Shown here piece after piece: positions 15,966-38,700 of a DNA stretch of 64,000 nt; position 1 is the first letter of the stretch, and each line of letters starts with the position of its first letter. The stretch is taken from NCBI GenBank assembly GCA_977017575.1, contig CDRNVI010000044.1, forward strand, positions 868,001 through 932,000. Reading direction: 5' to 3'. The position numbers were made by a program, and so were the translations under genes. The notes beneath the pieces are model-generated. The model had not been told where the DNA came from, did no database searches, and saw only the letters and a list, made by a program, of their open reading frames with translations. Source of the stretch: Paramoeba atlantica. Its lineage: Eukaryota > Protista > Discosea.

Positions 15966-16400
15966 CTAACTGATCCCTTTTTCCCAACCAGACTTCTTTG
16001 TGAAAATGATTTCCCTATTCACGACACAGAGAGGAATCTCCAGAAGCGGTGGTACTGCATTCGGAGCTTCAAGACGATGGTTTGGACACGAAGCACATGT
16101 CATACAGCCGTCCATGTGGCCTTTCTTGCACGGTAGTGGTCCAAGGCTAATCGGGTCATCCAAAGCGGGTAATTGAGACATTGAACAGCCTACGTACATC
16201 ACAACGTATATCACAAACGTCATTGCTATTAAGGAAGAAAAGCGAAGTGCCCACAATTTATCGGGAAAATAGGTTATTCCCAATGTATCGGAAAGTTGCC
16301 TGTCAGTAACAAATGCCCAAAGCAAAAATGAAAGCAAGGTGAATATGCTGAGCACCCAACCAATAAAGCCGTATACTGCTGCAGTAGGCGTATGTGCCAT
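15966..16400 (-). CDS. PIGP: GPI-GlcNAc transferase subunit PIG-P
   Basis: AVYGFIGW...FLLWAF...LGITYFPDKLWAL, two TM helices, and PPLLEIPLCVVNRE tail. Confidence 0.9.
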   Translation of the reverse strand: MAHTPTAAVYGFIGWVLSIFTLLSFLLWAFVTDRQLSDTLGITYFPDKLWALRFSSLIAMTFVIYVVMYVGCSMSQLPALDDPISLGPLPCKKGHMDGCMTCASCPNHRLEAPNAVPPLLEIPLCVVNREIIFTKKSGWEKGIS

Positions 16401-19515: not shown

Positions 19516-20484
19516 TTATGGGGAGCGTGTCGTGTCCTTTGTTAATCCAGAGAATGGTTGATTTCGGTTCCAGTAGATATCCCCCTTGCGGCGTCGCATG
19601 TCCTGCTCCAATTCAGTATAATCCTCGTGTTTGTCTGGTGGAATGCTATGCACATCAGTAGATTCTGTGCCAATAGAGGAATCACCGCCCCCTTCAAGCT
19701 CGCCAATGGGCGTTTCGCCGGCATTGGGGGCCACAATTTGGTGAGCTTCCTCAAATGTGGTATTGGACTCCTCAGCTGTACCTCGGTAAGTCTTACTTGA
19801 CGTCACGGATCCGCTGTATTTATAAAATTGTGAGACCTGTTCCTGCATGGCTGCAGCTAACATTTCTTTTGACTGTGATTTAGAGGTCAGATTAATTTTC
19901 ATCACTCGCCGAGTGTTAGGGTAGCCGAAAAGTGCCGGGGGGCGCACAGGAAGTCCCAATTTGAGTCTTTCTCGGCCTTCCACATTAGGTTCCAAAATAG
20001 AAAATATGTAATAGTGTTTGTATTTACTCATTTTTCGACATTTCTTTATGTGGACTAAATCGCCCTCAACGCATGCCATGTCTTCATCATGGGCAAAGTA
20101 TCTTCCTGTTTTAGCTACTCTTTGATTAAATTTGGGGTAGTAAACCATGTAGTTTGCGGCCACTACAGCTGTTTTTAACATGGAAGTAGAAACAACGTAG
20201 CCTATTTTGTCGGCGCCCCGAGCACTATTGAAAATAAGGGAAGTTGCATCATACGGCCATCCCATACGATGTGGCCGCGTCTTCATGACCCCGATTTGTG
20301 CAACATTAAGATGGGTCCGTCCCCGATTAGGGAAATGTCCTCTTCGGTACTTTTTCACGTATATTTTGTGCGTAGCAGGCCATACACGCCGCTGAACGTG
20401 TCCTCCGCGCTGAAGAACCTTCATATTTTTTTGTTCTGTGGAATAGTTCCACCATGGAAGCAGCCTAGAGCACACTCGAAACAT
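19516..20484 (-). CDS. MRPS17: Mitochondrial ribosomal protein uS17m with extensions
   Basis: GYVVSTSMLKTAVV...YPKFNQRVAKTGRYFAHDE...CVEGDLVHIKKCRKMSKYKHY is an S17 core; the N-terminus resembles a mitochondrial presequence. Confidence 0.85.
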   Translation of the reverse strand: MFRVCSRLLPWWNYSTEQKNMKVLQRGGHVQRRVWPATHKIYVKKYRRGHFPNRGRTHLNVAQIGVMKTRPHRMGWPYDATSLIFNSARGADKIGYVVSTSMLKTAVVAANYMVYYPKFNQRVAKTGRYFAHDEDMACVEGDLVHIKKCRKMSKYKHYYIFSILEPNVEGRERLKLGLPVRPPALFGYPNTRRVMKINLTSKSQSKEMLAAAMQEQVSQFYKYSGSVTSSKTYRGTAEESNTTFEEAHQIVAPNAGETPIGELEGGGDSSIGTESTDVHSIPPDKHEDYTELEQDMRRRKGDIYWNRNQPFSGLTKDTTRSP

Positions 20485-20637: not shown

Positions 20638-23496
20638 TCAAAAAACGTTTCTTCTGCCTTTAAAACCGGTTTTCTTTGGTCCCTCTCCCGTTGCCCCCAG
20701 CGGGCGCTTGACTGCTGTACGAGAAACTGTCGACAGTATTTCATCCGACGTTGGCTTCGAGTCATCCGATCCAGGCCGTTCATGCACCGTCACCTTGGAC
20801 ACGGTTAACCCTTGAGCTGCAGCCTGATCGCGATGGTTTGAGGCGAGTGAATTTCCGGTAGTTTGCTCCGTTTTGCTGCTCCGCTGTTCGTTCATGTTTC
20901 GAATATTAAGTAAATGGGGGGCTGCTTCTGCTACCCACTCAGGTTCTACCGCAGACACCATTGTCATGTATTCCCGGTCGCCGCTTGTGTGATGCATCTC
21001 GTGGTAAATAACATATGGTGGCATGGAAGCACCGGTCATGAGGGCGCTGGAGGGGTGGAGATGGGCAGGCACAGACCTTAGCAAAAGAGCACTGTATTGG
21101 GTAAGTGCGTTTCGTCTAGCGACATGAATGTAGTGAGAAAACGCTAAAGCCTTTCGTATCGCATCCAAATGTCTCCCACACGATTTCACAGGATATTTCA
21201 GTCGTAATAGTGTATCCCTAAGTTGCTCTCGAACGAGGTCAATTTGTCTTAGGATACCTTCATTAAGGTTATGACGGTGAATCCAGGAAGCATCATGTCG
21301 ATTCTTTACATAATTCTCGTATATGTTCAAGAGAGTGAGATGATCACTTTCGAATACAAAAAACTTCTCCCTAGCCATGATAGCCTTCTCAATATCTCCA
21401 CTTGGGGGCAAGAAAAGTTTTCGGTAATCAACGCTTAGTACAGCGCTGATGGTAATGGCCTCTTCCGTACACTCAAAGCTGATAGATGCCTCCAGAAACT
21501 TGGCAAGCAATGTATCCAGCGGAAGATCAACCATCAGACGCCCTGTGGAAGTCAGTTTTCCCTCAGAATCGAGAACCTTGAGCCTCCAAAGTTCTAGCAT
21601 TGATTTATTCAAGCTTTTGGGCGGCGGTGCGTCCATTAATGGGAAGCTTCCGATGTCATTTACCTCCAAGGAATTGATTAGTAGAACCACGTGACACATA
21701 TCAGTGCGTTGAATTTCGGGTGTTGTGTATTGGTACATGTCATTTTCGTATTGGTTTTCGGTGTACAGTCTATAGCACCATCCTTCCCTGGTACGCCCTG
21801 CCCGACCTGCACGTTGATCAGCTTGTGCTTGACATATGGGGTACACCTTTAATGTGTTCAGCCCAAGACTAGGAACATACTGCTTTATTTTGCAAAAACC
21901 ACAGTCAACTACAAACTGAATGCCCTCAATTGTCAATGAGGTTTCAGCGATATTTGTAGCAACAACGCACTTCCGTTTCCCTTCTGGGGCCGGTAGAAAC
22001 ATTTTCACTTGGTGAGTCGTTGACATTAGCGAATACACGGGAATAATTACAATATTATCCGCATGCTTTGGACTATATCTCCGCAGACGTTCTCCGAGAA
22101 GATATGTGACACAATTCACGTCCTCTTGTCCGGTCATAAACACAAGAATGTCTCCTGGCATTTCCTTTTTTACGTGAATCTCCATTGCTGTAAGTACTGC
22201 TTGCTCGATGTAATCAGAAACAGGAGATGGTGCGTGTTTCACATGAACCTTAAAAGTTCTACCCGGTATCTGAAAAAGAGGAGCTCCGTTGAAAAACTGA
22301 ACAAAACGTTCTGGGTTCAACGTTGCTGAAGAAATAATCACTCGAAAATCCCTCCTATAACCCAAAACTCTCTTCATAACGCCAAGCAACAAATCCGTAT
22401 CCAGAGAACGTTCGTGGGCCTCATCCAGTATCACACACGAGTACCGGTCCAAGTACAAATCCTGCACGGCTTCTCGCAGTAACACCCCATCCGTGACGTA
22501 ACGAATCCGTGTAGCCGGCGTACAGCAATCCTCGAAACGAATCGCGTACCCGACCGTATCTCCGAGCGCCGTTCCCACCTCCTCCGCCACCCGTTTCGCC
22601 ACCGCAACCGCCGCCGCTCGACGAGGCTGTGTACACCCCACCATCCCCCCTTCCGTGTACCCCCCCTCCATCAGGTACTGCGCCAGCTGCGTAGTCTTCC
22701 CACACCCCGTCTCCCCACTCACCACCAGCACCGGATTCTCCCGCACCGCCTGGAGAAACGCCCCCCGATGGGCGTGCACCGGAAGTTCCCTTCGCACCTT
22801 TTCCATCTCCTCTCTTGACCTTCCCCTTGTGTTGTGTACCTTTTCCATGGCCCTCCCCAAGGAGGGCTGCGCGTGGGTCGTTTCCTCTTCTTTTTCTTTT
22901 TCTTCTTGTTCTTCTTCTCCCTCCCCACGCCCTCCCTCCAGCCTTTGCCCCTCCCCTTTGCCCCCTCGCGGGTCCATCTCCCGTAACTCACGGGTTTGCC
23001 GCAGCCGCTGCTGGAGCTGCCGGTAGCCGCGTAAGCTCTCGGACCCGTTCAGCGCGGAGAGCGCGAGCGCACTGCGGGGGTCTCGAAAGAGAGACACGGG
23101 TTGGGGCGCCTCGGGGGTGTCCGGGTCCTGGGGGGCGCCAGCGTGCGGGAGACGCATAAACGGGGGGGACCAGGCCTCCGGTTTCGCGGTCAGCACCACA
23201 GGCGTGTCCTCCTCGGTCTCCACCACGGGGTGAAAGGGGTTTGGAGGTTGCGAAGGAGTGGTCAATCGGGTCGATGCCTCATGGGGGAGAGAGACCCGGG
23301 GAAAGGGGTCGCGGGGAAAGGGGTCGCGTGAGGTACGTAAGGACTGGAGGACGTTCTGTTCTCGTGTTTTGTAGTGATGATCTAAGGAGGGGTGGGTCTC
23401 ATGGACGGTAACGGATTCGAGAACGGTGTCATCTTCACGATCGTACCATGTGGTGTCCGATAAGCGGTCAAGGGGGGTCTCCGCATGTTGTGCCAT
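20638..23496 (-). CDS. PRP16: Spliceosomal DEAH-box helicase Prp16/DHX38
   Basis: GETGCGKTTQLAQYL, DEAH, SAT and QRAGRAGRT motifs; REKFFVFESDHLTLLNIY is typical of Prp16. Confidence 0.85.
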   Translation of the reverse strand: MAQHAETPLDRLSDTTWYDREDDTVLESVTVHETHPSLDHHYKTREQNVLQSLRTSRDPFPRDPFPRVSLPHEASTRLTTPSQPPNPFHPVVETEEDTPVVLTAKPEAWSPPFMRLPHAGAPQDPDTPEAPQPVSLFRDPRSALALSALNGSESLRGYRQLQQRLRQTRELREMDPRGGKGEGQRLEGGRGEGEEEQEEKEKEEETTHAQPSLGRAMEKVHNTRGRSREEMEKVRRELPVHAHRGAFLQAVRENPVLVVSGETGCGKTTQLAQYLMEGGYTEGGMVGCTQPRRAAAVAVAKRVAEEVGTALGDTVGYAIRFEDCCTPATRIRYVTDGVLLREAVQDLYLDRYSCVILDEAHERSLDTDLLLGVMKRVLGYRRDFRVIISSATLNPERFVQFFNGAPLFQIPGRTFKVHVKHAPSPVSDYIEQAVLTAMEIHVKKEMPGDILVFMTGQEDVNCVTYLLGERLRRYSPKHADNIVIIPVYSLMSTTHQVKMFLPAPEGKRKCVVATNIAETSLTIEGIQFVVDCGFCKIKQYVPSLGLNTLKVYPICQAQADQRAGRAGRTREGWCYRLYTENQYENDMYQYTTPEIQRTDMCHVVLLINSLEVNDIGSFPLMDAPPPKSLNKSMLELWRLKVLDSEGKLTSTGRLMVDLPLDTLLAKFLEASISFECTEEAITISAVLSVDYRKLFLPPSGDIEKAIMAREKFFVFESDHLTLLNIYENYVKNRHDASWIHRHNLNEGILRQIDLVREQLRDTLLRLKYPVKSCGRHLDAIRKALAFSHYIHVARRNALTQYSALLLRSVPAHLHPSSALMTGASMPPYVIYHEMHHTSGDREYMTMVSAVEPEWVAEAAPHLLNIRNMNEQRSSKTEQTTGNSLASNHRDQAAAQGLTVSKVTVHERPGSDDSKPTSDEILSTVSRTAVKRPLGATGEGPKKTGFKGRRNVF

Positions 23497-23889
23497 TGTT
23501 TTGCCTTTTTCAGCGGATGAATTCTATAACGACGTAGTTTTCTCCGGCGTACGTTTCTCGATCCATGCGCATTTTTTATGCCTTGCTGTCCTGTACTAGA
23601 AAAATAGTTGTGAAAAACAATGGAGAATATTTTTATAGAAAAATGAATTAAAACACTTGTATTATTAATTGCGTGAACATCGGTGGAATGTAAAACGTAG
23701 AATGTAAATAGCCATATAGTTCCACATACAACGTACGAGTACATTGATAAATCTAAAGAAATCACTGATATTGTTTCGTCCGCATAAAATGATCGGAGTG
23801 TTTGCTTTATTGACGCGCGGTATTTCTACAGCGTAGTACGTATCACTTAAAATATAATATATAAAATACAATAGAATTCTTCAAAGATT

Positions 23890-24453
23890 CTAAATTGGTT
23901 TGATACGAAAGTGTGTGCTAATCAAGGCAAAGATTAACGCCTTGAGGTCTTGGGATAAATAATAAAATATTTTCAAGCCTTCCGCGTCTGTACAGCATTC
24001 TACCTCAGACAAAGTACCAAGTTTTTCTGTGGTGTACGACGCAGTTTGCGTACCGAGTCGAATTTCCAAATGTTGTCTTCCCGTACGGCCAGCCTTCGGC
24101 CACTTCTTGTCGTTGTACTCTAAAAGTTTGCTATCGCATATGATCTTACGAATCTGGTACAGTATCAAACCCCCGCATACAACATCTTTTTGAATCAACC
24201 CATCTTTCTTATATTCACTCTGATTCACATAGTGCAACAATCCCGTATTAGCCACAGTGAATTGAAGAAACTCATGGCCGTATCGTCCGCGATGCCCCAC
24301 GTAAAATTTTACGAAAAAGTTTGATAAATCCACTGGTTCTTCATCTTCATCAAAAACAAAATGAGATGGCGCGGAAAGAACAACGGATGCCATCGTATCA
24401 GTGGGATTCTCTGAGTCCCCAGTGCCCTGATTTTCAGTTGTAAGGTCTGTCAT
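23890..24453 (-). CDS. MAGO: Mago nashi (exon junction complex core)
   Basis: FYVGHRGRYGHEFLQF, GRQHLEIRLG and FYYLSQDLKALIFALISTHFRIKPI. Confidence 0.95.
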   Translation of the reverse strand: MTDLTTENQGTGDSENPTDTMASVVLSAPSHFVFDEDEEPVDLSNFFVKFYVGHRGRYGHEFLQFTVANTGLLHYVNQSEYKKDGLIQKDVVCGGLILYQIRKIICDSKLLEYNDKKWPKAGRTGRQHLEIRLGTQTASYTTEKLGTLSEVECCTDAEGLKIFYYLSQDLKALIFALISTHFRIKPI

Positions 24454-24668
24454 GTGAGTAGCAGAAAATCAGTCTATAATAGCAATGCAACATACTTATG
24501 TTAGTACGTAAAATAATGCTATTCTAAAGCCGCTAGTGCTATTCTATTTTTTAAGCTAAAATTCGATTCCAGTTTTCTTTAAAAATGGTATGCGGCCACG
24601 TAATTTAGTGTCTGAATCATCATTTTTTGCTACGTATTCATTTATGCCACTCGATATACAGGACTAAA

Positions 24669-26459
24669 TTACACTCTACCAAATTGGTTTCGCAAGTTCT
24701 TCTCATAGTCGGATGCGTGAGCAAGCTCTTTTGTAGCTACTTGAATTCGATGCTTTGCCGCATTAGATTCTGTTTCCCTCATGTGCTCAAAAACGACCGC
24801 TTGCATTCGGAGATCCTTGTACTCTTTAATAGTATCCTTAAGACGTTTTTCGAGATAATTAAATTGCAATGCACTATTTTTATCCCGGACGGAAGACTGT
24901 TGATCGGGGGTACAGATGTTTGCTCTCAATTTACTATTATGCCTTTGCAAAGCAGTAGTAACATCTGAAATACTCAATGAATTTCTTTGTTCATCCATGT
25001 TTTCAAACCGATTTTTGGTCTCAGCAAATTTCATATTTTCGTATTCAATTAGCTTGAAACTTCTTTCACGCTGTGCAGCGGTGATACATGTGGGCTGCAA
25101 AAGTTCATTGTGGACAAGTTCAGTAGGAGAAAGGTTTTTAGTGTGCTTGTTTTCGTGTGAAGAAAATGTTTTATCGTCCGCTGATTTCTCACTTTTTTTA
25201 ATCTGCCGAACATCTTCCTCACCCACATATTGGTCTTGGCGCTGGGACGGCCCTCTCGTTAAATCCGTCATATTCTCAGGAAATGGCTGAGCACCAGAGA
25301 CTGGCACTATGGGAATTACCATCTCTAGATCTTTTAGAAAGGTCGGAATAAGGCTCGATCCATCTATATTACGAAGCGCAACACTATCAGTTACACGTTT
25401 TGAAAATGTTTCCGACATAAAGTTATTTTTCTGTTGGTTTTTATCGAGGGACTCCTCCTCGGCGTCATCGAATTCAAAGCGAGGAACAACAGGAAATGGA
25501 TGTGTCGTATTTCTCTCGTCTTTTATCACTTTCTCACTATCGGAGGAGACTGTGGGGGTTTCGGGGCGATGGCTACCATGCGACGTAGCTTGCTGTTGCG
25601 AGTCCTTACGTAGAGACTTGGTCTTTTCACCTTCTAAAATGCGAATGTCTAACACAGGCGTCGTGTTGTCAATCACTGGATTTAAGCTATCATGAGAATC
25701 CGAAAATGCTGCGCGAGACAAAACAGAGTCGCGCAATATTTGCTTTTCTACCTGTTCTTCATACGTCGCAGCAGTTTCGCCTTCTACTAACATGGGGGCA
25801 CCTTCTGAATTCAAAATTCTTTTCCGTAGCACACGGCGCTCCGCCTCTGTTGTCTCATCCTTCGCAATTAACCCTGCCTGCCGTAATTCTCTCTCCCGCT
25901 GTAGTTTGCTAAGACCCCGGGCTTGCGCGATTATCGACTCCTTATGTTTGCGCTTATCCTTCCGACTTTGGACGTTCGCAAGTCGTGCTCGTCCCTCTGC
26001 AAGCATCGCTTCTTCGTCCGCATCCAAATCTATGGCGTCCGGTATTGGCGGCTGCGTGTGTGGATATGACGCCTCAGCTCGAAAAAGCGAAGGAGAATCC
26101 ACATCTGGATTTTCCCCTTTCTCTGAGGTCCACTCGTTTTGTAGCAATTCTTCATAACGGGAGAGACACTGTTGAGCACTGCGTCCCATGGACTGGCCAA
26201 TCGTTCTCCACTGCTGTGGAAACCGTCTAATATTTTCAATCAACTGAATGTCCTCCTCGGAAGTCCAATTGTGTTTCTTAAGCCGTGGATCTAAATATTC
26301 TGACCACCGAGCCCGACACTGTTTCGGGGTTTTATAGCGCAGCACGGAGGAGATGCGAGACCAGTCGTTAGTGCCGTACTTCATAACAAACGCCGTAAGA
26401 AGCTGGTCCTCCGAGTTGCGCCAAGTAGAACGCCTCGGGTCGTTGAGGTTGCTAAACAT
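24669..26459 (-). CDS. CDC5: Cdc5/Cef1 Myb-repeat splicing factor (NTC)
   Basis: Two Myb repeats (WRNSEDQLLTAFVMKYGTNDWSRISS; WTSEEDIQL) and PDAIDLDADEEAMLAEGRARLAN. Confidence 0.93.
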   Translation of the reverse strand: MFSNLNDPRRSTWRNSEDQLLTAFVMKYGTNDWSRISSVLRYKTPKQCRARWSEYLDPRLKKHNWTSEEDIQLIENIRRFPQQWRTIGQSMGRSAQQCLSRYEELLQNEWTSEKGENPDVDSPSLFRAEASYPHTQPPIPDAIDLDADEEAMLAEGRARLANVQSRKDKRKHKESIIAQARGLSKLQRERELRQAGLIAKDETTEAERRVLRKRILNSEGAPMLVEGETAATYEEQVEKQILRDSVLSRAAFSDSHDSLNPVIDNTTPVLDIRILEGEKTKSLRKDSQQQATSHGSHRPETPTVSSDSEKVIKDERNTTHPFPVVPRFEFDDAEEESLDKNQQKNNFMSETFSKRVTDSVALRNIDGSSLIPTFLKDLEMVIPIVPVSGAQPFPENMTDLTRGPSQRQDQYVGEEDVRQIKKSEKSADDKTFSSHENKHTKNLSPTELVHNELLQPTCITAAQRERSFKLIEYENMKFAETKNRFENMDEQRNSLSISDVTTALQRHNSKLRANICTPDQQSSVRDKNSALQFNYLEKRLKDTIKEYKDLRMQAVVFEHMRETESNAAKHRIQVATKELAHASDYEKNLRNQFGRV

Positions 26460-26852
26460 ATCAGAAAATAGATTAGAAGAATCAAGAATAAGGGTAAAAA
26501 TAGACGTGCGTTGTACGGCTATCGATGTCTTGCTGACATACTACTCATTCTTTATAATCGTTGCATACAAACATTCCGAAACGGTTTCATAAATACCCCG
26601 AAACGTTTCAATAAAGGCCTTCTCTGGAATACTGGATGAGAAATTTCTTAGACAGCTCTGAGATGCCAGACGCATCCATGGGTATTTTTTTTATTCTTAT
26701 TTTCTGTGTTCAGGCTTGCCGGGGAAGGCTCTTCGAAATATGCAGTAATAAGGTATATTTCTTCGGATGCTTCCGGGTTTCTATATTCATAGTCTTTACT
26801 ATATGCAGTACTCAGTACATCAGAGAGTACTTGAGCGTGTAGCTCACAATTT

Positions 26853-27227
26853 CTAGGGTGCTCTTGACTCTAACATTGTGTAAATCTGTGAAAAGAGTCC
26901 CATCAGCACAAGGCAAAGAGGCATGGTGCGTGTAGCACATCGTGCTTCCCGTAAAAGTGTGCGGACCACTAGAAGACAATGTCTTCGCAAGGAAATAAGA
27001 TGGTTCCCCCTTGCTTTCCCTGTTTTAAGGATTTCCTGACAAAGTCTACGTGACAACACGCAAGATTTACTATACCAGATACAGTGTCGCATGCCAATCC
27101 GGTAAGATTTTAGGACTGTTCGTAGCACTTTTACTTCATTTTCAATGGTTGAAACAGAATAAAACTGATTCGAAGGAACGTTTCCATTGCGTTTACAATG
27201 TCCTGCTCCACTGTATGAGGCCGTCAT
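26853..27227 (-). CDS. Small protein resembling the Rmp1/NEPRO N-terminal (DUF4477) domain
   Basis: ATG start on the sense strand. IENEVKVLRTVLKSYRIGMRH and PLCLVLMGLFSQIYTML recall the ExxVLxxxL..RH and LxLVxxGLxSRxxxL blocks of NEPRO/Rmp1 (compared from memory). Confidence 0.5.
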   Translation of the reverse strand: MTASYSGAGHCKRNGNVPSNQFYSVSTIENEVKVLRTVLKSYRIGMRHCIWYSKSCVLSRRLCQEILKTGKARGNHLISLRRHCLLVVRTLLREARCATRTMPLCLVLMGLFSQIYTMLESRAP

Positions 27228-27598
27228 ACTGCGCTGCCCATTGAAGACTCCATTTTACCTTATCAGACGATTTAGTGGATCATCAGTTGATTATTAAACT
27301 CTAAATTAAAGTTCTACCATGCTAAAAATGTTACAGAATGTATCCTTTTATCACGTTTCCTCTACTACTACATTTTTTCTTGTAATGTACACTTAAGTAA
27401 TATGTATTCATGAAAAATATACGCGTACACAAAAACCAGTTTTTCCGCACTCATACATTGACAACGATCACATTTTCAAGCACGCATTCCCACAGATACA
27501 TACAGATTGTAGGTCGTCAACATATCCTATGTGTCCGTAGTACGTATTCGTGTTCATGAAAGCCATACAATAAAGATGTTACATCTCATTCAAAATGT

Positions 27599-27952
27599 CT
27601 ATTGCTGCACGCGCACCTTTTTTCTAGTACTCGAAGTACTCTCTCCTGGCCTCTTTTTACCCTTTTCTGGCATCTTGCTTGCAACACGAGGTGTTGACAA
27701 GTCTGCAAGCAACGCGTCCAAGTTTACACTGTCGCTTAATTGATAAAATCTGATGTTGTTTCCCCTTACTGTAAGGCAATCAAGCTCCGAGCGGGGTTTT
27801 TCCTTGCTGCTGACTTTCACATTTTTTAGATGAGTGTTCATCGCATTGTCAACTCCAGTCACTGTACCGTTCACTGCGCTGCCATCCTTCAAATGTAACG
27901 TCACCACTTCATTTGTCAATTTCATAAGAAATCGAACCAAATTCAGGGGCAT
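27599..27952 (-). CDS. SMD1: Sm core protein SmD1
   Basis: LVRFLMKLTNEVVTLHLKDGSAVNGTVTGVDNAMNTHL and LTVRGNNIRFY. The basic tail has no RG repeats. ATG is at 27952. Confidence 0.93.
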   Translation of the reverse strand: MPLNLVRFLMKLTNEVVTLHLKDGSAVNGTVTGVDNAMNTHLKNVKVSSKEKPRSELDCLTVRGNNIRFYQLSDSVNLDALLADLSTPRVASKMPEKGKKRPGESTSSTRKKVRVQQ

Positions 27953-28181
27953 CAAGGAATAAAGAAATGCGAGTTGAAAAAGTGACTAAAAAGCAATAAA
28001 GATTGAAAATCACGGGCAAGTACAAATCAAAATGCTTCAAAAACTAACTCAACGAAGAGTAGCGATTAGACACAGCATGCATACCTTGCACTGAAAGAAG
28101 ATTGTTATTTTAATCGTAACAATAATAATATAAAAAGAAAGCTCGGGCAGATGGGTGTGCTAGGCCCCGGCAGTCATCGCA

Positions 28182-28258
28182 CATCGACAGAGCCTCTGAC
28201 CCGTTGGTGTGTGGTTAGATGTTTTATGTGTCGTAGAGGCGTTGGTCGATGAAAAACA
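28182..28258. ncRNA. Candidate structured RNA hairpin, unassigned
   Basis: CATCGAC (28182-28188) pairs with GTCGATG (28245-28251), GCCTCT with AGAGGC, and GAC with GTC. It forms a GC-rich island within AT-rich intergenic DNA. Confidence 0.3.
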
Positions 28259-28591
28259 ATTAACGACTACTTTACCATAATCATAGAACGGCAGCATACT
28301 TTTTTGAAGCAACTACAGCATAGAAAATGTTTAAGCTTTGAGACTTAAACAGTTTTTATCCAAAAGAAAAATGCTAAACTACCGAAAGTAACTCATACGA
28401 ATATCATGTTTATCATGATCGAAAAGTCAATGGTTGGTTTAAATATCTAGAAATAATCATGTTGATGATTTTCTCTATTCGCTACAAATAACTGCACTTA
28501 CAAAGAAGATTTCAACGATCATCGTTGTGATAAGTCCTTGAATATCGTGCTAAGATTCGAAGGCACTTCTTTGTTCCGCTGAACCCATTGC

Positions 28592-28873
28592 TTACACCGC
28601 TAGCTTGGAAACTCTCGTAGGTATGCGTGCCGCGTAATGGATATCAATACACTCCCTCATATTCGCAAGAACAGCTACCGTTGTAGTCAACAACACTAAA
28701 AAAGACACCAAAAAAGCGTGAGGGAGGTAGCTATATTCCATTGGTGGAAAGTAATCCATCCAAGGATGAGTCAAATTGATAAAAGGTGTGATGATGACCC
28801 ACAGCAGATAGTAGACGTAGAACGCGATGGAACCGTAATAAAGGACAATACCGAATACGGCGTCTGAAACCAT
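28592..28873 (-). CDS. DPM2: Dolichol-phosphate mannose synthase regulatory subunit DPM2
   Basis: YYLLWVIITPFINLTHPWMDYFPPMEY matches DPM2 YYTxWVIxLPF...H....YF; two TM helices; ATG at 28873. Confidence 0.85.
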   Translation of the reverse strand: MVSDAVFGIVLYYGSIAFYVYYLLWVIITPFINLTHPWMDYFPPMEYSYLPHAFLVSFLVLLTTTVAVLANMRECIDIHYAARIPTRVSKLAV

Positions 28874-29320
28874 CGGAATGCAGGTCACACCACAGGTCTA
28901 AGGATTGCTACATTCGTGCAGGTAGTGGTATAAGAATAACAAAAGAAATTATTTTTCGTTCACTCAACTTTTTGAAGTGTAAAATCACACGTCTTTCAAA
29001 AGGGAAATTATACTTTGTGGAATCTTTCATTGAATGGGTTTGTCAGAATCCGCTTTCTCTCATCCATTCCTCTTTCTGAGAGCAGCTTTGACGGACTCAT
29101 TATATCTGTTTTCTTTATGACACGTGAGAACTGAGCTAGTAAGAAAAAGATTAGTGAATCGTAAATAATATGTAACTCGTAAATAATATGTCTTGAATTG
29201 CCTTTAGAAATCGTGGACACAATGTGTCTAATATTCCAATGTATCAATATGTGTCACAGAATCCAAGAGCAAAGGCACTACTTGTGCATTCGGTGCCGCA
29301 GTGCTAAAACTAGTGGTTGC

Positions 29321-30490
29321 TCAATCTTCAGTGACCATCGGCATTTCCTCAATCTGCGTACCATAGAATTGTTCAATATCTCTTAAGAGCTGTGATTCTT
29401 CGTTACCGCAAACGAAATTTATTGCTATTCCTTTTCTGGCGAATCGACCTGTCCTACCAATGCGATGCAAGTATGTCTCGCGATTCTTTGGTAGGTCAAA
29501 ATTGACCACGAGAGTAACCTGTTGCACATCAATACCTCTGGCAAGGACATCTGTGGTAAGTAAAACTCGAGTAACACCGTTTCGAAAATCTTGTATAATA
29601 CGATCTCTCTCAGCCTGGGGCATTTCACCATGAATCATAGAAACACTAAAGTGGTCACGTTGAAGCTTCATTCCCAACCAGGTCACACGTTCTCGAGTAT
29701 TCAGAAAAATTACGGAGTGAGATGTGTGCAGAGATTCATACAAATCTTTCAGAGTGTCGTACTTCCATTCCTGGCGTTCGATCGGAACAAAATATTGCTT
29801 AATCTCCTCAAGTGCCAGCTCATCTCGCTTTACCAGAACCCTAACAGGATCAGTCATTACCTTTTCAACCAACTCTAATGTGGCTTGCGTAAGTGTAGCC
29901 GAAACAAACACAATTTGAACTATTTGTGGTAAATAAGAGTAACATGCATAGACTTGTTCCTTAAATCCCCTATCCAACATCTCATCTGCCTCATCAAGAA
30001 CAAAAAGTCTGATATTCCGCACGCGAAGACATTTCCTCTTTAGCATGTCAAAAACTCTCCCGGGAGTTCCACTCACAACTTGTACCCCACTCTCCAGACG
30101 CATCATGTCCTCTGTCATACTCTTACCCCCAATCACCGCATGGGCCGTCACTGCCATGAAGTCTCCCAGCGCTAGGCAAAGCGTACGTGTCTGAAGGGCA
30201 AGCTCTCGAGTTGGATTCAAAACAAGTGCCTGGGTTTCCCTAAGATTCGTGTCGAGACGTTGCAGAATGCCAAGAACAAACATGGAGGTCTTGCCCGTAC
30301 CCGACTGTGCTTGAGCCAGAACGTCGCGGCCTTGTGCGACGGAGAGTAGCGTACGCTGTTGGATAAGGCTTGGCTTTGCATATCCGTAGGCAAAGAGGCC
30401 CTTTAAGAGATCGCTACGAAGTTGAAAATCCTCAAACTGATGGATAACTCCCTCTGCGTCTGGTGTCGGTGTCGAACCGTCAACAATCAT
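29321..30490 (-). CDS. EIF4A3: DEAD-box helicase eIF4A-III/Fal1 (EJC core)
   Basis: [49 protein letters not shown] and HRIGRTGRF motifs. Likely ATG is 30490 (an upstream in-frame ATG exists at 30577). Confidence 0.85.
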
Positions 30491-30730
30491 AGATAGCACT
30501 AAAACGATTTTTAGAAAATGCCTGCATTTTAAAATATACAAAAAAATGGTAATGTTAGAAGCGGAACTTTTGGCCATTCACGCATCAATCAGGTATTCAC
30601 GAAGTTAAATCAAACCCATTTGGTTCATTCCCATGTTATACGTACATTATACAACATTTATATTTTATATACTGCATTTAACAATTTATTAAATTGTTAA
30701 ATGTCTATGTTAAATTTAAATATACAACTA

Positions 30731-31577
30731 AACCACTCAAGAATAAGGCACCCCCCCTTGTTTTTCGCGCGCGGGGACCCATGGGGGTTGCAGCACCACT
30801 TTTTCGTTCAGAATTGAGATCTGTGCGTCCCCGGGGTCTTTAGACTATTTTGAAACTTTGAAAAAAATAGTTTCAAAAATTTATTGACACCCTAGGGAAA
30901 ATACTATTGTACCAAATTTTCGAGGACAGTGTCCCGAAGTAACTGGCACGAAACCTTAATATTTCTGTGAAATGCATGCAAAGATATCCGAAAGCAAAAA
31001 GACACCTAATCGACATATTAGCACAGAAAAAAAAATAGGCCGAACAAAAAATGTGAACAAATCATTTCTACTAAAGATATTGATGGAGACTGCAGCGCTA
31101 GATACATTGCAGGAAGATTAAGCAAAATCGGGCGGTTTTCCCCCTGGTTAACCTTTTCTAATGAGTACAACGGGTGAGTTTCTTAATTTTTTTCTGCCAA
31201 AAGGATCTATTTTTCAAAGGGAAAATCATGATCTAGGAGGTACTGGGGGGCTAGGGGACTATACAGATGAAACAAATACGCGAAATGGCTTATTTATTCC
31301 CTTTCTGTCGAATGTCGAAGGAATTAGATGAAAAGCTATTACGCTACTCTCTGTGGCCTGATTAGATTATCGTGACCTGGACTATACAGGTAAAGCATAG
31401 AAGTAGAAAGGCAAAAAAATGGTAATCGCCAATTCATATTCTACCTTATTCACCCCGGGATAAGTTTACGAGGTGCACAAAGTCTATTTACTGAGATCTG
31501 CAAAATGCCACAAGAATTTACTCAAACGGACTTACCATACTGACTTTAGAGGGGGGGCCTTATCGTGTCGAGGGGTT
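30731..31577 (+). mobile_element. Internally deleted derivative of the 13707-15073 Tc1 element, in opposite orientation
   Basis: 30740-31130 matches the reverse complement of about 14570-15060, and 31420-31577 matches the reverse complement of 13707-13870. TA flanks at 30729-30730 and 31578-31579. Confidence 0.85.
31305..31387 (+). repeat. Dispersed repeat family, copy A
   Basis: CTGTCGAATG.CGAAGGAATTAG..AAAAGCT.TTACG.T.CTCTGTGGCCT...CTGGACT is shared with 32313-32399 (reverse) and 35651-35713. Confidence 0.8.
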
Positions 31578-32312
31578 TATATATGTTTGTACAATAGATA
31601 TGTACAATAGATATCCCGCATTCCGCCTCCAAAACAGGCAGTTTGAAGATAAGTAACGTACTAGGATAAGTAGCGCACTACAGTGTAGAACAAGTCGTGT
31701 GACCTTCAAGGTGATGTTTTTAGTGTTTAGTTTCTGGGATTCTCAGATATTTTATTATGTAGCGAATGTCATGCTTGCGTCAAATAAGCAGGGAAATATC
31801 ATCTTTATCATCATGATTGGAAGGTGTTTAAAAGTTATTTACTAAAAGTTGTAATACTGTGACGCCCCTTATTATGGACACTTTTTCGGCTTTTGTTCAT
31901 AATAAAATGGGAGGGGTGAAAAGGGTCTGGAATAAAAAAATGCTAACATGCAAGCCATAGCCTTGCATGTGAAGCAGCATCTTTATTGTTTGACGGGAGT
32001 CGCTTTCTCCCTTTCCCCCTGACGCATATGATGTGTGCATTACTGTCACCCGCCTCTTTAGATTTTACAGGTATAATATTTAAGATACAAATTAGTTTTA
32101 TAACGTTCTTGTCACTGTGTCAATTTTTGGGAGCAATAGGTGTCCAGAGATAGAGATAAAGATAACCATTTTCAGGAGGGGAAAAGATGAAGGTTGAGTG
32201 GGAGGATTATTTATCATGCTTCGTCATTTTTCAACTTATCATGATCTTTTATTTTCTCTCTCTATTAAAGGGGGGGTCTCAGGGGGTCTCTATTAAACGA
32301 GAGCACAGTAAG

Positions 32313-32470
32313 CATACAGTCCAGGCCACATTGTCAGCCCCCTAGGCCACAGAGTACACCGTAAGAGCTTTTGACCTAATTCCTTTGGCATTCGACAGAT
32401 ATTAAAAAAGTGGAATGTTTCCCGTATTTTTTTCACATGTGGAGCCCCCCACATGAGTAACGGGTAAAAA
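32313..32470 (-). repeat. Dispersed repeat family, copy B (uninterrupted reference copy)
   Basis: Reverse complement reads GGGGGGCTCC..GTGAAAAAAATACGGGAAACATTCCACTTTTTTAATATCTGTCGAATGCCAAAGGAATTAGGTCAAAAGCTCTTACGGTGTACTCTGTGGCCT. Confidence 0.8.
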
Positions 32471-32619
32471 GAAAACATGGAAAAATGAGAATTATTCTGA
32501 AATATTTCGCGAAAAGTTCAATTTTTAGGTGTTTCTTGCTATAAAACCGTATCTCATCAACATGCTATTGCGGAAAACCCCTGTTAAATCTACTGAGAAT
32601 CTTATTCCAACACGCCCCC

Positions 32620-32880
32620 GAACGAAAACCCCCAAATTACGCACAAGATAGCTCAATGCGAACTCTTGAAATCACTCGTCAGTCCAAAAAGAAATTTAGT
32701 TAAAGAAATTTTAAAGCCTGAAAATGAGTAAGAGCTTCGGGTGGCCATTAAAAAAGCTTTTTTGGTGATTAAGCAAAGTCCCTATCAGCGTCAGGTTCTG
32801 AATTGTATGAATTTAGTGACCAAACGCATTTAAATTATGCAGCGTGTAAAGGGGGGTCATACAGGGTACTGGTTTGTCCC
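32620..32880 (+). pseudogene. Highly decayed Tc1/mariner transposase C-terminal fragment
   Basis: Translation across stops and a frameshift gives PPN...DIAQCELL...KPENE*ELRVAIKKAF...CMNLVTKRI*IMQRVKGGHTGY, resembling PPxSPDLxPxE...GGHTKY ends. Confidence 0.5.
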
Positions 32881-33290
32881 TTCAAATAAGTATTTTCTGA
32901 TGATTTTTTTCATTTTTTTCGTCTAAAAGAACTATTTTTTAAGGGAAAAAACCCAACTTTGGGAGTGTACACAGGGGGTCTAGGGGTCTCCTCGGATGAA
33001 AAAAAAACGGAAAACGTTCTACTTTTTCAAGAGAGGGACTGCGGGTACTTCGACCGAGACCGCACCGAGACCGCACCGAGACCGCACCGAGACCGCGGTT
33101 CGTATTTTCGATGGGGAGAGATAGAAAAACAGCCAAAAGTTTACATTTGTTTTTATTTTTAAGTGGAATTTCGAATTCGGTGTACGCTTCTAGCTATATT
33201 TTTCTTTGTTTCTTTCTCTGAATCATTTTCATCCTTTTTACTAACAACAGCGCGGTTTTCTTTTGCTGTAAATTTTGCTCCTAAATTTTT

Positions 33291-33935
33291 ATGACTATCG
33301 AGAGCAATGACGCATTGCAAGAGCGATTGACTTCTCTTGAGCCTGAGACAAGTGCCGAAGACAAATTCTTCGATGTCATCAACGCTTCGACGATCCGGGT
33401 CTTTACGAAGAGGCCCGACGTTTTCTCCAAGCCACGTTTGGAGATAAGCAATGCAGAGCTCAGTAGTAAAGTGGATGAACTCGCAGGGCGCGTGTCATGC
33501 ACGATGGACAACTTCCTACATGTTGCACGCTCTGTGTGTGGCATTAACTTGACCTCGTGCATCGTGACTCGCGTCCTGTTCCACTTGGTTGACCGCCGGG
33601 GCCATCTGCTTCTGAGCGTCCGCCCCCGGAGCGCGTACTTCCTTGGAGAGGCAACCGCCGACCTTGAAGCGTACCTTCAAAAAGACCCTCTCTTTTCCCC
33701 CCATCACCAAGGTGAAGTGGGCGACTTTGTGGACAGCGTGCGGTGCTCTTTTTCCGGGAAGCGGTCTCTCGTTTGCCAGCAGTGGCGTCAGCGCAAGCGG
33801 ACCGCTTCTCGTCAAAATGAATCAAGCAGCGGGGCTGAAGTCTCACCACCACCCCCAGAATACAATCCTCCCTCGTATTCGGTGGCCAGCCCGATCGCTA
33901 CTTCGGATCATTCGATTCGTTTCCCGGCCTTATAG
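33291..33935 (+). CDS. Transposon accessory ORF1 (214 aa), no recognised domain
   Basis: Intact ATG-TAG ORF inside the TIRs, preceded by a polypyrimidine tract and AG at 33249-33250. Confidence 0.6.
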   Translation: MTIESNDALQERLTSLEPETSAEDKFFDVINASTIRVFTKRPDVFSKPRLEISNAELSSKVDELAGRVSCTMDNFLHVARSVCGINLTSCIVTRVLFHLVDRRGHLLLSVRPRSAYFLGEATADLEAYLQKDPLFSPHHQGEVGDFVDSVRCSFSGKRSLVCQQWRQRKRTASRQNESSSGAEVSPPPPEYNPPSYSVASPIATSDHSIRFPAL

Positions 33936-34239
33936 GTGTGCTCCACATGAGACGAGAAAGTACGAAGGTAAGACGGTAACAAGGTCTTACGAAGGTAAGA
34001 CGGTAATGAGATGGTAAAGAAGGTAATAAGGCAAGTTAGAAGGCAAGGTAAGGTAAGGCAATTTCGTCCCCACTACTGTTCTGTTCGATTTTCCCTAATT
34101 ACTAGCTCATTCCACTAATTGTTATTTCATTCCACTAATTACAAGTACATGCTAAAATATTTCCGCCCAATAATAAAATACAACCCTACTTATTCTGCTT
34201 TTAAATCGAAATTTCCTTCAATCGTTTCATTCTCTCTCT

Positions 34240-35225
34240 ATGTTTGGCATCTCGGCAGCACAGGTGCGGGAGTTCTACAACGAGCTCCGACGTGTGCATG
34301 GATCCGATGTTACGGAGACTGATTACCGTCGTGGTCAGTCATCATTGTGCATCTGTTCTCTGAATTGCGCATGGGAACAGTTGTACGATGTCCAAAGGGC
34401 GTGGCTCTCACCGGACGCCCCGTTGATTTCAATTCGGACTCTCCAGGATGATTTTACTCGTGTGAGCTGTGCCGTTCACCCCTGTTCATGAACCCCGAGC
34501 CACGGTTTACCCAGGGAGTATCATGGTTATCTGACGTAACCTGCATGCTGGACGTCACGACGATCCCATGTCGTGCAAGAAAACCGAGAGAAGCACCTGA
34601 TGGAACCACCCGAGGTAGCACCTATTCGGGAAAGCACCGGCAGCACTGCTTCAAGGTGGAAGTTTGGCTAACTCTGGCCGGAGTTCCATTCTTCTTTCGC
34701 GGACCAGTTGTTGGCAGCATGCATGATGCCAAAATTTATATGAGTACTAGTGTGCATCGTACTCCGCTGTTCACTCACCACGAAGATGAAATGTTCTTGG
34801 CCGATCTAGGGTACATAGGTTGTGCGCACTGCCTTGTACCCTATAAGAAAACTGGCTGTGGTCTCACCGATGATGAAAAACGTGTGAATGAAAGGATTTC
34901 ACTGATTCGCTCTCGAATTGAGCGACGTTTTGCACATTTCGACAAGTTTCGTTTTCTTCATGGTACTGATCATGATATATCATGGGTCAGAGACGCTTTT
35001 CAAATTGTTTCTGTAGTTACGTATGGACTGCTGGCTACTCAGCCGCAGTATGTTTTCGATTCGATTATAAATTTAAGTTTGAAATCTACAAGTGATGAAG
35101 GTGAGTGTTTATGTAGTAAAGGGTGCGGTGTAGTTGATGGTATCGAAAGCTGCAGAGAGTGGCTTAAGGAAAATATAGATGGCGTTGCCTATGAGCCTAA
35201 AAAATCAAATAAGTGTGCTAAGTAA
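34240..35225 (+). pseudogene. DDE_Tnp_4 (Harbinger/IS5-like) transposase split by a 1-nt frameshift
   Basis: LDVTTIP, YSGKHRQHCFKVEV, GSMHDAKIY, FLADLGY and NERISLIRSRIERRFA motifs. Adding one C to the C4 run at 34479-34482 fuses the 83-aa and 245-aa ORFs into 328 aa. Confidence 0.85.
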
Positions 35226-36356
35226 TTTTATTTACTTATGGGCGGGGGGGGGGGTAGGCTTCCGGTGGGCCTAGGGGGTGTACACCAAAAAGAAAAATAT
35301 TTACGTTCAAGGCTCGTGATAAATTTGTAGTTATAAATGAGTGTATCAGGGTTACCCCTTTCTTTGGTAAAATCACGCGTATATTCCTTTTAGTAGATTT
35401 GTTACTAACCGTACAGATTTGTTAATAACCGTAAATTTCATTGAGATTTCCTCTCCAACTATGTCCGGATTCATGTAGCCTCGCCTTCGCCTTCTACGCC
35501 CCTGCCCCCACTCCCCACCCATTCCACACTTTCTGTTCTTGCACTGAGATAAGTGCGTACGCCGCACCGAGACCGCACCGAGGCCGCGCCGAGACCGCAC
35601 CGAGGCCGCGCCGAGACCGCACCGAATCCCCACCCGCAGCCCCTCAAGATCTGTCGATTGCCGAAGGAATTAGGTCAAAAGCTCTCACGGTGTACTCTGT
35701 GGTCTGGACTGTATTCTCAGATATGAGTATGCGTCGAATATCATGCTTGCTTCAAATAAGCAGGGAAATATCATCGATATCATCATGCTGAAAACTATTC
35801 TATATTTCGGTAATATTATTTTTTATTTAAATGACACTATATTATTTATTTAAATGGCGAAATTTTCCCATTATGGCGGGCCTACTTGTCGAGACATTTC
35901 TTTGGAAATACCTAGAATTCTTTGGCAATACCTAGAACAATAGGCTAAAATCCTTTTTTTTCAACATTTTAAGTGCTCTATAACACCGTAAAAGCCCGTT
36001 AACCTACGGTGCGTACTTCTAAAGACCACAATTTTACTTGCGTTTTTCCCCTATTTAAATATTATAGCGTTGACGCTACTGTATATTATTTAAAATATTT
36101 TAGAAACTTTAACACTATATTATTTAAATAACACTATATTATTTAAATAACGATTTAAATAATATACCGTTCCCGGGGTTACATGATTTGTTTTGCGAAT
36201 GCAAAGGGCATTTTGCCTTCTTTTTTTGCCTCTATAAGCCCAGTACACGAACCACGTAGGTCCATTGGGGGAGGTTGTTATATTCCAACTGATATAAAGA
36301 ATCTGACTTTCGTAGCGCGCACGTATCTTTAAGGTCCAAAAAAAAAATAGAATGTA

Positions 36357-37271
36357 AACCACCGTCCGGGTTATTATACCTAGGGACACCTATTGTACCT
36401 CCTAGGTATAATAAGTGTCCCTAGGGTCCTTATTATACCTCCCCCCCCCTACCTTCAGAGGCGGGTGCAGAACTTACAGGACAGTAAACTTTGATGTGGG
36501 AGGGGACTAAAATTTGTAAAACTTGGCCCATTTTGGAAAGTTATAGCGCATTCGAGAGCACTCGAACAGGGCTCATGAACGTGCAGGCACGTAATCTGCG
36601 TTTGGATTTTCGAATGCACATAGATCACATTGTTTTTTGGTAGACAAAATCTTGCATTTTTTACAATTTTTCTGATCCCCCCCCTGATTTATGCCACAAA
36701 GACGGGATTACGGACGATCGCCCAAACATAAACACTCCGAAAGGGTTAATTCATCTCCTGGACACGTAAAAGCATGCTGGTGCATGCTCTTTGTTGTCGC
36801 AGCAATCTTTTCCACTCACTGCGCGTAAATTTCAATGTTGCGTTTGATGAGGGAAACTTACCAAGAAATCAGATTGACATTGGATGTACTGCAGAAGTGT
36901 ATGGTTTTGTCTGCCACCATCTGTCACCGTCTGCCACTATCTGCTTGCATTACATCCCTTGTCAAGAATTTTGATCAGTTTGGGTATAGTAACCACGAAA
37001 ATACATGTATTCGTGACATTTCATATTCTTTTACCCCTGACCCCCCAGAAAACAATCTTACCCCCCACTCGCACACGTTTCCCCAGGCGCGAGAGGGAAA
37101 CTTACAAATGGATCATAACTTGTTGTGGGCAATGTGAAGAAGAACGCGCCGCGAAGCGGCGCGAAATTTTTTTTATCCTTTTTGCAAAGCAAAGTTATTA
37201 TACCTAGGGACACTTATTATACCTAGGGACACTTATTATACCTCCTAGGTATAATAACCCGGACGGTGGTT
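36357..37271. mobile_element. Non-autonomous TIR element (915 bp, TA target)
   Basis: TIR AACCACCGTCCGGGTTATTATACCTAGG at both ends; TA at 36355-36356 and 37272-37273; subterminal TTATTATACCTAGGGACAC repeats. Confidence 0.85.
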
Positions 37272-37301
37272 TAATATGAATTGTAATAAGTAAATTTTCA
37301 A

Positions 37302-38700
37302 TTAGCGGACACCCGCCTTCCTCCACTCTTTTACCGCGGAGGATAGTATCGCGGCGTTGCCTTTTTGAACAGCCACATTAATGGCTTGTAGTGCATGACG
37401 CAGGAAACCTTTCCTGTCATACGTATACCTTGCGATCTCCTTTAGGAGGAGTACGGTGCGCTTCCCTGCCACACCAAAAACGGTAAATGCAAGGGGGTAG
37501 AAATGCATACCCCTTTTCGTGGCCATGTCACTGTGCGCTTTTACTTACAAGCTTTCCACCCTTTCTAGAGTGTTGCCAGGCGCTACCCATTCGGCCTTAA
37601 CATAAGAAGGGGCGAGGGGGTTAACGACGGTCACGTCCACCAGACATATCTTCCCTCCCAGCATAAAGCAGACGTCGGGGCCCTGACCAGCAGAGAATCG
37701 GGGTTCATGATTGTCAGGAGTGAATCCGTACTGTCGTAGCAAGTGCACGAAGGCATTCTTAACAAGTTTGTGGCGAGTGGCCTCAGTGTCGCCTTTGACT
37801 TTATTGCAGTCAAGGGCGTGCACAACAAAATCTTTGTTTGAGAGGATGTCTCCGCACTCACATTGTGCGAAAGGGTCCGAAGTAGGTGCTATCAAGTATC
37901 GCATGCGCATGGCTGTTTCCCATTCTGCGTCGCGCATGAAGTACTCACCCCGATTCCTACGCGCCTCTGTCCAATTGCGCGTTCTCTTGTCCATCAACTG
38001 AAGTGAATGGACGTCATGTAGTTCGCTGGTTTCTTTACGCACTGCTGACTTCGACTCTTCATATCTTGTCAAGGCAGAACGTCGTCTTTCCATACACCCT
38101 AATACCTCAGCTTTTGTGCGAGAATACAGAGTTGCCGCTTGCTGCGCAAAAGGTTTCGCCCCCAAAAGGTCGCCCGTCATGAGAGTACTGTGAAACGGGT
38201 TCTTTTCCAGGTCTTCGAAGCCTCCTAGCAGCTCTGAGGCACACTCCTGTATGGCCTTGTCCGCTAACACGTTGGCTTTTGCCGTTACCTCCGGCTCATG
38301 ACACCGCATTAGGTAGTCCCACCGGGGGACTCCACATCTCTTCAGCAAAATGTAAGCACTTTGTAACGAGAGATGTTGCAGCCGATCCAGGAATGTCTGC
38401 AATTTAGGCATTTGGTTGACTACCCATCTGGTTTCATCCGCGCCTTCCTTGGAGACGAATGCACCTAGGAGCTTTTGTCCTTGCTCCGCATGCTCTATGT
38501 TCATACCTCTGAAAGGAGCGTACTGGTCATTGAAATGCGTCGAAAGCTTACATTTTGCCGGATGTACCTCCAGTCCTATTCCCGAAGCGTGATCACAGAG
38601 AGCGCCAAACGCCTGTGCGACACGTTCTGCCGGGCCGATGATTGAAAGGTCGTCTAGGTAAGCCCAAAGCGTCAGATCACTGAACTTATCCTTCAATATA
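37302..38700 (-). mobile_element. 5'-truncated non-LTR retrotransposon, CRE/SLACS-like (RT + CCHC + restriction-like endonuclease)
   Basis: WAYLDD and KLLGAF (RT); CECG...HALDC knuckle; RH, GPD and LVDVTVVNP RLE motifs. A premature TAA at 37545-37547 is followed in frame by FYPLAFTVFG...AVQKGNAAIL. Confidence 0.85.

Follow-up and report, generated by a model that had tools for sequence, protein, structure and literature searches.

Introduction

Kinetoplastids have almost no gene-specific control of transcription, and the gene content of their polycistrons is commonly held to be random with respect to function. Here we describe a run of spliceosome and exon junction complex (EJC) genes within 64,000 nucleotides of DNA (the window) filed under Paramoeba atlantica (GenBank assembly GCA_977017575.1, contig CDRNVI010000044.1, positions 868,001 to 932,000 of the forward strand), the source of which is probably a kinetoplastid of a deep-branching lineage that lives in or together with that amoeba. 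The run occupies window positions 20638-30577 on the minus strand and reads, along transcription, eIF4A-III, DPM2, SmD1, ORF124, Cdc5, Mago and Prp16.

The closest described parallel is in Leishmania major, in which genes for the same complex are enriched in shared polycistronic transcription units (PTUs) and lie closer together than random pairs, although whole PTUs are not functional operons; matched transcriptional output was proposed as the benefit (10.64898/2026.07.29.740908, a 2026 preprint). The window run shares these features: same-complex genes lie close together in one PTU that does not look like an operon, and matched output is a candidate benefit. The L. major pattern is, however, a statistical trend, whereas here we find a single dense run of five genes in a deep-branching lineage. 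Moreover, the orthologues of the run are dispersed in Trypanosoma brucei and are not found beside uS17m, the gene for mitoribosomal protein S17 that adjoins the run, in Leishmania or Bodo.

Spliced-leader operons of nematodes offer a second comparison. They contain two to eight genes separated by spacers of about 100 bp and have their own promoter and a special leader, SL2; those of Caenorhabditis elegans are reportedly enriched for gene-expression machinery, including splicing, in the 2002 account by Blumenthal and colleagues. In both systems, trans-splicing resolves the polycistrons and co-transcribed neighbours are enriched for RNA-processing genes. In contrast to the C. elegans operons, the run takes up a small part of an array that fills all 64 kb, its spacers measure 150-1100 bp and no trace of a second leader is seen.

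The proteins themselves are those of the trypanosomatid spliceosome/EJC set but are much less divergent, scoring higher against human chains than against the chains of structure 9if7, which we take to be trypanosomatid. Three of them, eIF4A3, MAGOH and CDC5L, occur together with RBM8A in the step II trans-spliceosome structure of L. tarentolae, which also carries Sm rings (PMC13601561).

Five genes of the run encode splicing or EJC proteins

The sequence-only reading of the window had proposed that five of seven consecutive, co-oriented genes encode splicing machinery. All seven open reading frames (ORFs) are present on the minus strand where it placed them, and the five names hold; splicing genes make up five of six genes, or five of seven if ORF124 is real. 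Identities were tested by Pfam domains, by the best match among solved structures (PDB) and by paralogue checks in the same genome. Structure matches and paralogue checks support the names Prp16, Mago, Cdc5, SmD1 and eIF4A-III, and the names also survived reciprocal searches, in which the structures matched best carry the expected names and the close paralogues (C40, C19/C43 and C52/C8) resolve to other proteins.

Prp16/DHX38 (20638-23496; 952 residues), the DEAH helicase of the transition from step 1 to step 2, contains Pfam domains DEAD, Helicase_C, HA2 (HA2_N and HA2_C) and OB_NTP_bind. Human PRP16 is its best match in PDB (662 bits, residues 129-881), ahead of DHX8 (590), DHX16 (570) and PRP43 (505), and the alignment extends past the helicase core. 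Helicase motifs I, II, III and VI are present as GCGKT at 264, DEAH at 358, SAT at 390 and QRAGRAGR at 561. Paralogue C19/C43 matches DHX16 best (DHX16/Prp2; 519 bits against PRP16) and C52/C8 matches DHX8 best (DHX8/Prp22; 576 bits against PRP16); the classification took in these two and left out two shorter DEAH paralogues (C29/C16 and C60/C51).

The second helicase, eIF4A-III (29321-30577; 418 residues; Pfam DEAD and Helicase_C), is the DEAD-box component of the EJC core. Its best PDB match is eIF4A3 (497 bits, against 454 for eIF4A1), while the sole close DEAD paralogue in the genome, C40, prefers eIF4A-I (458 bits, against 446 for eIF4A-III). Chain 9if7_L7, annotated as 'Probable eukaryotic initiation factor 4A', scores 456 bits with the window protein and 384 with the C40 paralogue. 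The HRIGR motif is found, and the catalytic motifs of both Prp16 and eIF4A-III are intact.

Mago nashi (23890-24453), also an EJC core protein, matches Pfam PF02792 over positions 1-142 of 142 (E 7.6e-53; domain at residues 46-187). Its orthologues in two relatives described below have 155-158 residues, and the alignment starts at residue 44. SmD1 (27599-27955), an snRNP (small nuclear ribonucleoprotein) core protein with a Pfam LSM domain, has its likely ATG at 27925, giving 108 residues, the length also called in an ENA assembly. All ten of its top PDB matches are SmD1 (E down to 1.5e-27), followed by LSm10 and SmD3 at 1e-7 or worse.

Cdc5/Cef1 (24669-26459; 596 residues), a core subunit of the NineTeen Complex (NTC/Prp19 complex), has two Myb repeats by Pfam. 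Its best PDB matches are Cdc5L, cdc5 and CEF1 over residues 11-200 (E 1.7e-49 to 1e-40, against 3e-22 for c-Myb), which takes in the Cdc5-specific conserved segment behind the N-terminal Myb repeats, up to about residue 200, and the genome holds no copy besides its own allele. In an exhaustive search of 1.8 billion representatives, the N-terminal 200 residues were the best-matched stretch in almost all of the best 150 matches, and no close full-length relative was found among these. Word-index protein searches with Cdc5 and Mago returned nothing beyond the window's own proteins or N-terminal matches. One JGI contig encodes a Cdc5 with 55% identity over the N-terminal region; the gene upstream of it is unrelated.

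Two ORFs of the run lie outside this set. DPM2 (28592-28888; likely ATG at 28873), a small subunit of dolichol-phosphate-mannose synthesis and of the glycosylphosphatidylinositol (GPI) N-acetylglucosaminyltransferase (GPI-GnT), has no splicing role and matches Pfam PF07297 above the curated cut-off (E 2.2e-11). ORF124 (26853-27227; 124 codons) is a doubtful gene. It has no Pfam match, no Atlas match and no gene call in the ENA assembly; its coding score of 0.028 resembles that of spurious overlapping ORFs (confirmed genes score 0.09-0.20), and its single-sequence structure model is of low confidence (predicted local distance difference test, pLDDT, 59). We therefore leave it out of the gene count, and its earlier candidacy as a ribonucleoprotein (RNP) subunit was rejected as unsupported.

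The assembly (45.7 Mb in 248 contigs) contains nearly every gene twice at ~99.3% identity and therefore holds two haplotypes. Gene order in the run is identical on the second haplotype (contig C70) and on an independently assembled ENA contig, so the run is not an assembly artefact. Around window position 22666 (Prp16 codon 278), the window has seven G where C70 and the ENA contig have six, breaking the Prp16 frame there; the difference reflects either an assembly error at the homopolymer or a genuine null allele. C70 Prp16 also has in-frame differences in a purine-rich stretch, codons 192-198. The 5' part of Prp16 lies in a GC-rich patch (window 22000-24000; 0.51, against ~0.43 around it).

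The run exceeds random expectation and has a counterpart on the same contig

We modelled chance as random placement of 80 to 250 spliceosome/EJC genes in a haploid genome taken to hold ~11,000 genes, at the window's density of one per 2 kb. Five-in-seven runs are then expected 3e-6 to 1e-3 times per genome, and five-in-six runs about threefold less often. When ~100 functional classes of similar size are allowed for, the expectation becomes roughly 3e-4 to 0.1. Under this model, genes for subunits of one complex are adjacent in one PTU of the window beyond what random placement predicts.

A whole-genome search for the LSM family, unguided by the finding in the window, uncovered a second snRNP run on the same contig (C44:463.5-466.8 kb), 425 kb from the first. 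SmE, SmD3 and LSm2, named by their best structure matches, lie there within 3.3 kb on the minus strand, with the RRM gene ahead of them; the full neighbourhood (C44:463400-468000, or L027:5429-9962) comprises genes for a 293-residue RRM protein, SmE, SmD3, a DnaJ protein, LSm2 and PIG-Y. Three LSM genes among four consecutive genes are expected ~1e-4 times under random placement, and these three are ancient paralogues, not recent tandem copies. No second-haplotype copy of this run was found among the LSM matches. C44 makes up 4.3% of the haploid genome and holds 6 of ~17 LSM genes (binomial 5e-5, or 3e-3 if the trio is counted once); it also carries a PRP38 gene. By eye the RRM gene suggested a Tat-SF1/CUS2-like factor; a weak Pfam RRM_1 match, generic RRM clusters in Atlas and a model pLDDT of 44 leave that name unsupported.

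A three-gene core is shared with two distant relatives

The gene just downstream of the run, uS17m (19516-20484, minus strand; Pfam Ribosomal_S17), served as the anchor for synteny comparison. Its kinetoplastid orthologues are 52-67% identical to the window protein overall: 53-54% for Bodo saltans and Leishmania and 62-67% for proteins from three ENA long-read assemblies (ERZ25071330, ERZ25074155 and ERZ24894578). In a uS17m tree, the window protein is sister to these three relatives; the clade of four has 100/100 support, and a long branch separates it from all other kinetoplastid sequences.

In two of the ENA relatives, the genes for Mago, a DEAH helicase and uS17m are direct neighbours and follow each other as in the window. 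Their helicase scores 647-660 bits against the window Prp16 and 308-432 against other DEAH genes of the window genome. Their SmD1 orthologue is an LSM gene on the opposite strand at a distance of 4.5 kb: among all LSM genes of the window genome it matches SmD1 best (E 1e-20 to 1e-23; other Sm genes, 1e-8 to 1e-10). In the 21-kb locus of one relative, only SmD1, Mago, Prp16 and uS17m recur in the 64-kb window, and the other 12 of 16 genes have no counterpart in it, indicating that the neighbourhood was reshuffled while the splicing genes remained linked. Judged by the uS17m tree, the SmD1-Mago-Prp16-uS17m linkage dates from the ancestor that all members of the clade share. In the third relative the arrangement is lost, and uS17m adjoins the orthologue of another C44 LSM gene.

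Cdc5, eIF4A-III and DPM2 were not found within 10 kb of uS17m in the relatives. These three genes appear to have joined the core in the window lineage, and Cdc5 and eIF4A-III are read as later additions because neither is seen near the core in the relatives.

In the relatives, the stretch between SmD1 and Mago (L077:2407-6566 and L074:2400-5450) encodes a double GTPase of EngA/Der type and a Band_7 protein, to which one relative adds a PrmA-like methyltransferase. Taken with uS17m beside Prp16, these genes look like a small mitochondrial-translation grouping.

Coincidence and relocation as alternatives to a functional neighbourhood

Several observations weigh against a functional meaning of the run. 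Very many windows were scanned, so a rare coincidence may have been picked out and a low random expectation alone is no proof. The spacers of the run (153, 215, 393, 447, 666 and 1139 bp) are not shortened relative to the other 18 in the window (153-680 bp). No shared motif was found in untranslated regions (UTRs), and no word is enriched in the 3' spacers after correction for multiple tests. Among 16 other splicing loci (12 further Sm/LSm genes plus DIM1, BUD31, PHF5A and SF3b10, the last four chosen prospectively), 15 have no spliceosomal gene as immediate neighbour. No splicing gene lies near uS17m in Bodo saltans, Leishmania enriettii or a metagenome contig. Finally, T. brucei CDC5 (Tb927.5.2060) and SmD1 (Tb927.7.3120; PMC8682746) are on chromosomes 5 and 7, and Magoh (Tb927.6.4950) and eIF4AIII (Tb927.11.8770; PMC8311971) on chromosomes 6 and 11; these four orthologues are thus spread over four chromosomes. 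Orthologue positions, a check proposed by the sequence-only reading, give a divided picture, with the core linked in two relatives and the arrangement absent by uS17m in Leishmania and Bodo.

The simple random-placement model makes chance unlikely for the run and so did not refute it. The survey of the 16 loci shows that clustering of splicing genes here is local and exceptional and follows no genome-wide rule. Only one of the 16, an LSM gene on C190, has such a neighbour, a divergently oriented WW-WW-FF gene (Prp40/TCERG1-like), and that contig may be amoeba DNA. A family search of the genome for Isy1 gave no match.

Some LSM genes adjoin other RNA machinery: Dus in one case, a subunit of RNase PH type in another, and SRP14 with Spt5 and NTF2 in a third. 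On an ENA contig of the same organism, around the C2 LSM gene (L063:3854-13394), we found a gene for an RPB3/AC40-type polymerase subunit and, past two unannotated calls, genes for TYW1 (wyosine synthesis), a GPN-loop GTPase, LSm and Utp21. These neighbours were classified post hoc and are a lead only. PHF5A occurs twice with the same flanking genes, 19 kb apart (C15:371132-371449 and C15:390397-390714), and once on C53, the other haplotype; the doubled block points to a segmental duplication.

The main rival explanation is coincidence preserved by stable gene order: three splicing genes became linked by chance in an ancestor, gene order changed slowly and two more arrived by chance, with no function involved. 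We regard this as possible and rather unlikely. Three splicing genes in seven consecutive positions are estimated to occur ~0.2 times per genome under random placement, and kinetoplastid synteny is very stable. In Bodo saltans, Leishmania enriettii and the metagenome contig, genes for EF-hand, WD40, NDK7 and TCP1 proteins precede uS17m and a proteasome gene lies just downstream, in conserved order. The many windows scanned, with 796 carrying notes in this genome alone, and the 15 solitary loci also fit coincidence. However, given the three-gene core, the estimate for two more splicing genes in the same seven slots is ~7e-4. The second snRNP run was found without selection bias, and in the relatives the splicing genes are still linked although the rest of the neighbourhood is fully reshuffled.

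A weaker rival, which we consider improbable, is a bias of relocation in which short, highly expressed housekeeping genes move to permissive sites near transposon islands, for instance as leader-primed retrocopies or by transposon transfer, and so build runs of small genes irrespective of function. Both runs are rich in very small genes, and each includes a small GPI-GnT subunit (DPM2 in the window run, PIG-Y beside LSm2), with PIG-P 12 kb away in the window; the run adjoins a transposon island, and leader-headed retrocopies exist in the genome. But three of the genes (Prp16, Cdc5 and eIF4A-III) fall outside the class of short genes, the linkage of SmD1, Mago and Prp16 is old, no spliced-leader remnant was found in the window within three mismatches, and no A-tails were seen in the 3 kb read. 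A retrocopy origin of the run was rejected on the lack of a leader remnant in the window.

The run lies in an ordinary polycistron

The window is one long minus-strand array with ORFs from 319 to 63759, and its notable plus-strand ORFs are transposase ORFs. Downstream of the run, uS17m is followed by genes for kinesin, PIG-P, Hsp90, Vps53 and sugar transporters. Upstream lies a transposon island of ~7 kb (30600-37500), present in both haplotypes and in the ENA contig, with a DDE_Tnp_4 ORF at 34488-35225 on the plus strand; this bears out the earlier claim that a large transposon island bounds the run on one side. Beyond it are unrelated genes, among them a 2472-codon ORF and those for a leucine-rich repeat (LRR) protein, cytochrome c1, a 5'-nucleotidase and a nucleotidyltransferase. 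No spliceosomal gene was found in the 64-kb window outside the run.

An operon would be limited to related genes, would be driven by its own promoter and would have unusually short intercistronic spacers. Here, same-strand genes continue across the window with unrelated genes on both sides, and the spacers are of ordinary length. The window instead shows the features of a kinetoplastid PTU, namely dense, intron-free, co-oriented genes in a genome with a kinetoplastid-type leader. Shared UTR motifs, for which the sequence-only reading proposed to look, were likewise not found: the best hexamer, TTTTAC, is found in 7 of 9 splicing-gene spacers and 2 of 18 others and fails correction for 4096 words. 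The spacers of the run contain no Rfam family above threshold and no tRNA genes. One Rfam match, 'whalefall-1', at 22817-22870 inside the Prp16 coding region and its GC-rich patch, is sub-threshold and was taken as spurious.

Ordinary spacers, no motif, no RNA gene and a continuing array mean that nothing marks the run as a control unit. The proposal of an operon-like RNA-processing locus accordingly stands as regards the unexpected concentration of splicing genes and falls in its regulatory sense. A true operon-like unit with dedicated control, through an internal promoter, a shared RNA element or a processing signal, seems to us very improbable. The functional coherence of the genes favours one, and the upstream transposon island could separate transcription domains, but the genes are co-oriented with everything else across the window, their spacers match those of their neighbours, no motif survives multiple testing, and Rfam and tRNA searches came up empty. 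From its sequence features, we class the run as local structure within a long polycistron and not as an operon.

Elsewhere in the window, 58652-61357 encodes a 901-residue nucleotidyltransferase of MTPAP/TUTase type, and 62917-63759 is a 280-residue ORF with a match confined to the helical domain of POLQ-like helicases. Small GPI-GlcNAc-transferase subunits occur by both runs (DPM2 at 28592-28888, PIG-P at 15966-16400 and PIG-Y at L027:4911-5153); they reflect either a second functional grouping or a tendency of very small genes to gather.

Source of the DNA

The genome carries a kinetoplastid-type spliced leader of roughly 39 nt, ending in CAGTTTCTGTACTTTGTTG. This leader and the uS17m similarity to Bodo and Leishmania underlie the kinetoplastid assignment and agree with the kinetoplastid origin assumed from sequence alone. 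Several Sm proteins match MMETSP transcripts exactly, one of them filed in EukProt under Paramoeba atlantica. The published Perkinsela, with a 9.5-Mb genome, was reported without SmD3, SmE and LSm2 (PMC5601477); all three are present here, which rules it out as the window organism. Contigs C138, C139 and C178 carry intron-split LSM genes (e.g. C139:184566-185042) in low-complexity DNA of different composition, and these intron-rich contigs are probably from a second organism, the amoeba host.

One full copy of the spliced leader lies outside the leader genes (L001:1483-1520). An A-run lies before it, a short 5' UTR and an ORF headed by ATG come after it, and the whole resembles a trans-spliced mRNA or element copied into DNA.

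Discussion

We favour, at roughly even chances, a reading in which the run is a real, non-random spliceosome/EJC neighbourhood within an ordinary polycistron, made of an older three-gene core with two later additions and likely to provide matched dosage. A linked core of SmD1, Mago and Prp16 beside uS17m would have predated the split from the two distant relatives, and Cdc5 and eIF4A-III would have come to lie beside it in the window lineage. In keeping with established kinetoplastid biology, the run would have no control of its own: its genes are most probably part of the transcript of the whole array, and trans-splicing and polyadenylation would process them as they do the adjacent genes. 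Near-equal position in one transcription unit would then give them shared polymerase flux, position-dependent expression and copy number. Matched dosage would suit the parts of one stoichiometric particle where gene-specific transcription control is scant; we infer this selective benefit, and the case for it is about evenly balanced.

Products of the run come together in one particle in the L. tarentolae structure, in which the association of Magoh with eIF4AIII was seen (PMC13601561). In T. brucei, that association and the role of the EJC are disputed (PMC11888146).

A more ambitious version, which we advance tentatively and think rather doubtful, is that selection progressively gathered a dosage-balanced 'supergene', first SmD1, Mago and Prp16 and then Cdc5 and eIF4A-III, with position in the polycistron replacing gene-specific control.

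The run provides a concrete, checkable case for the recent proposal that the place of a gene in a polycistron helps to balance its dosage with that of its complex partners. Its core was kept while all other neighbours changed, and a second snRNP run lies on the same contig. A natural comparison series is at hand: three linked genes in relatives, five in the window genome, and no such arrangement by uS17m in Bodo or trypanosomatids. We read the locus as one strong instance of local structure in a polycistron, with an older core of three genes at its base. If the supergene version were true, location in a polycistron would take over the role of gene-specific transcription control for a stoichiometric machine.

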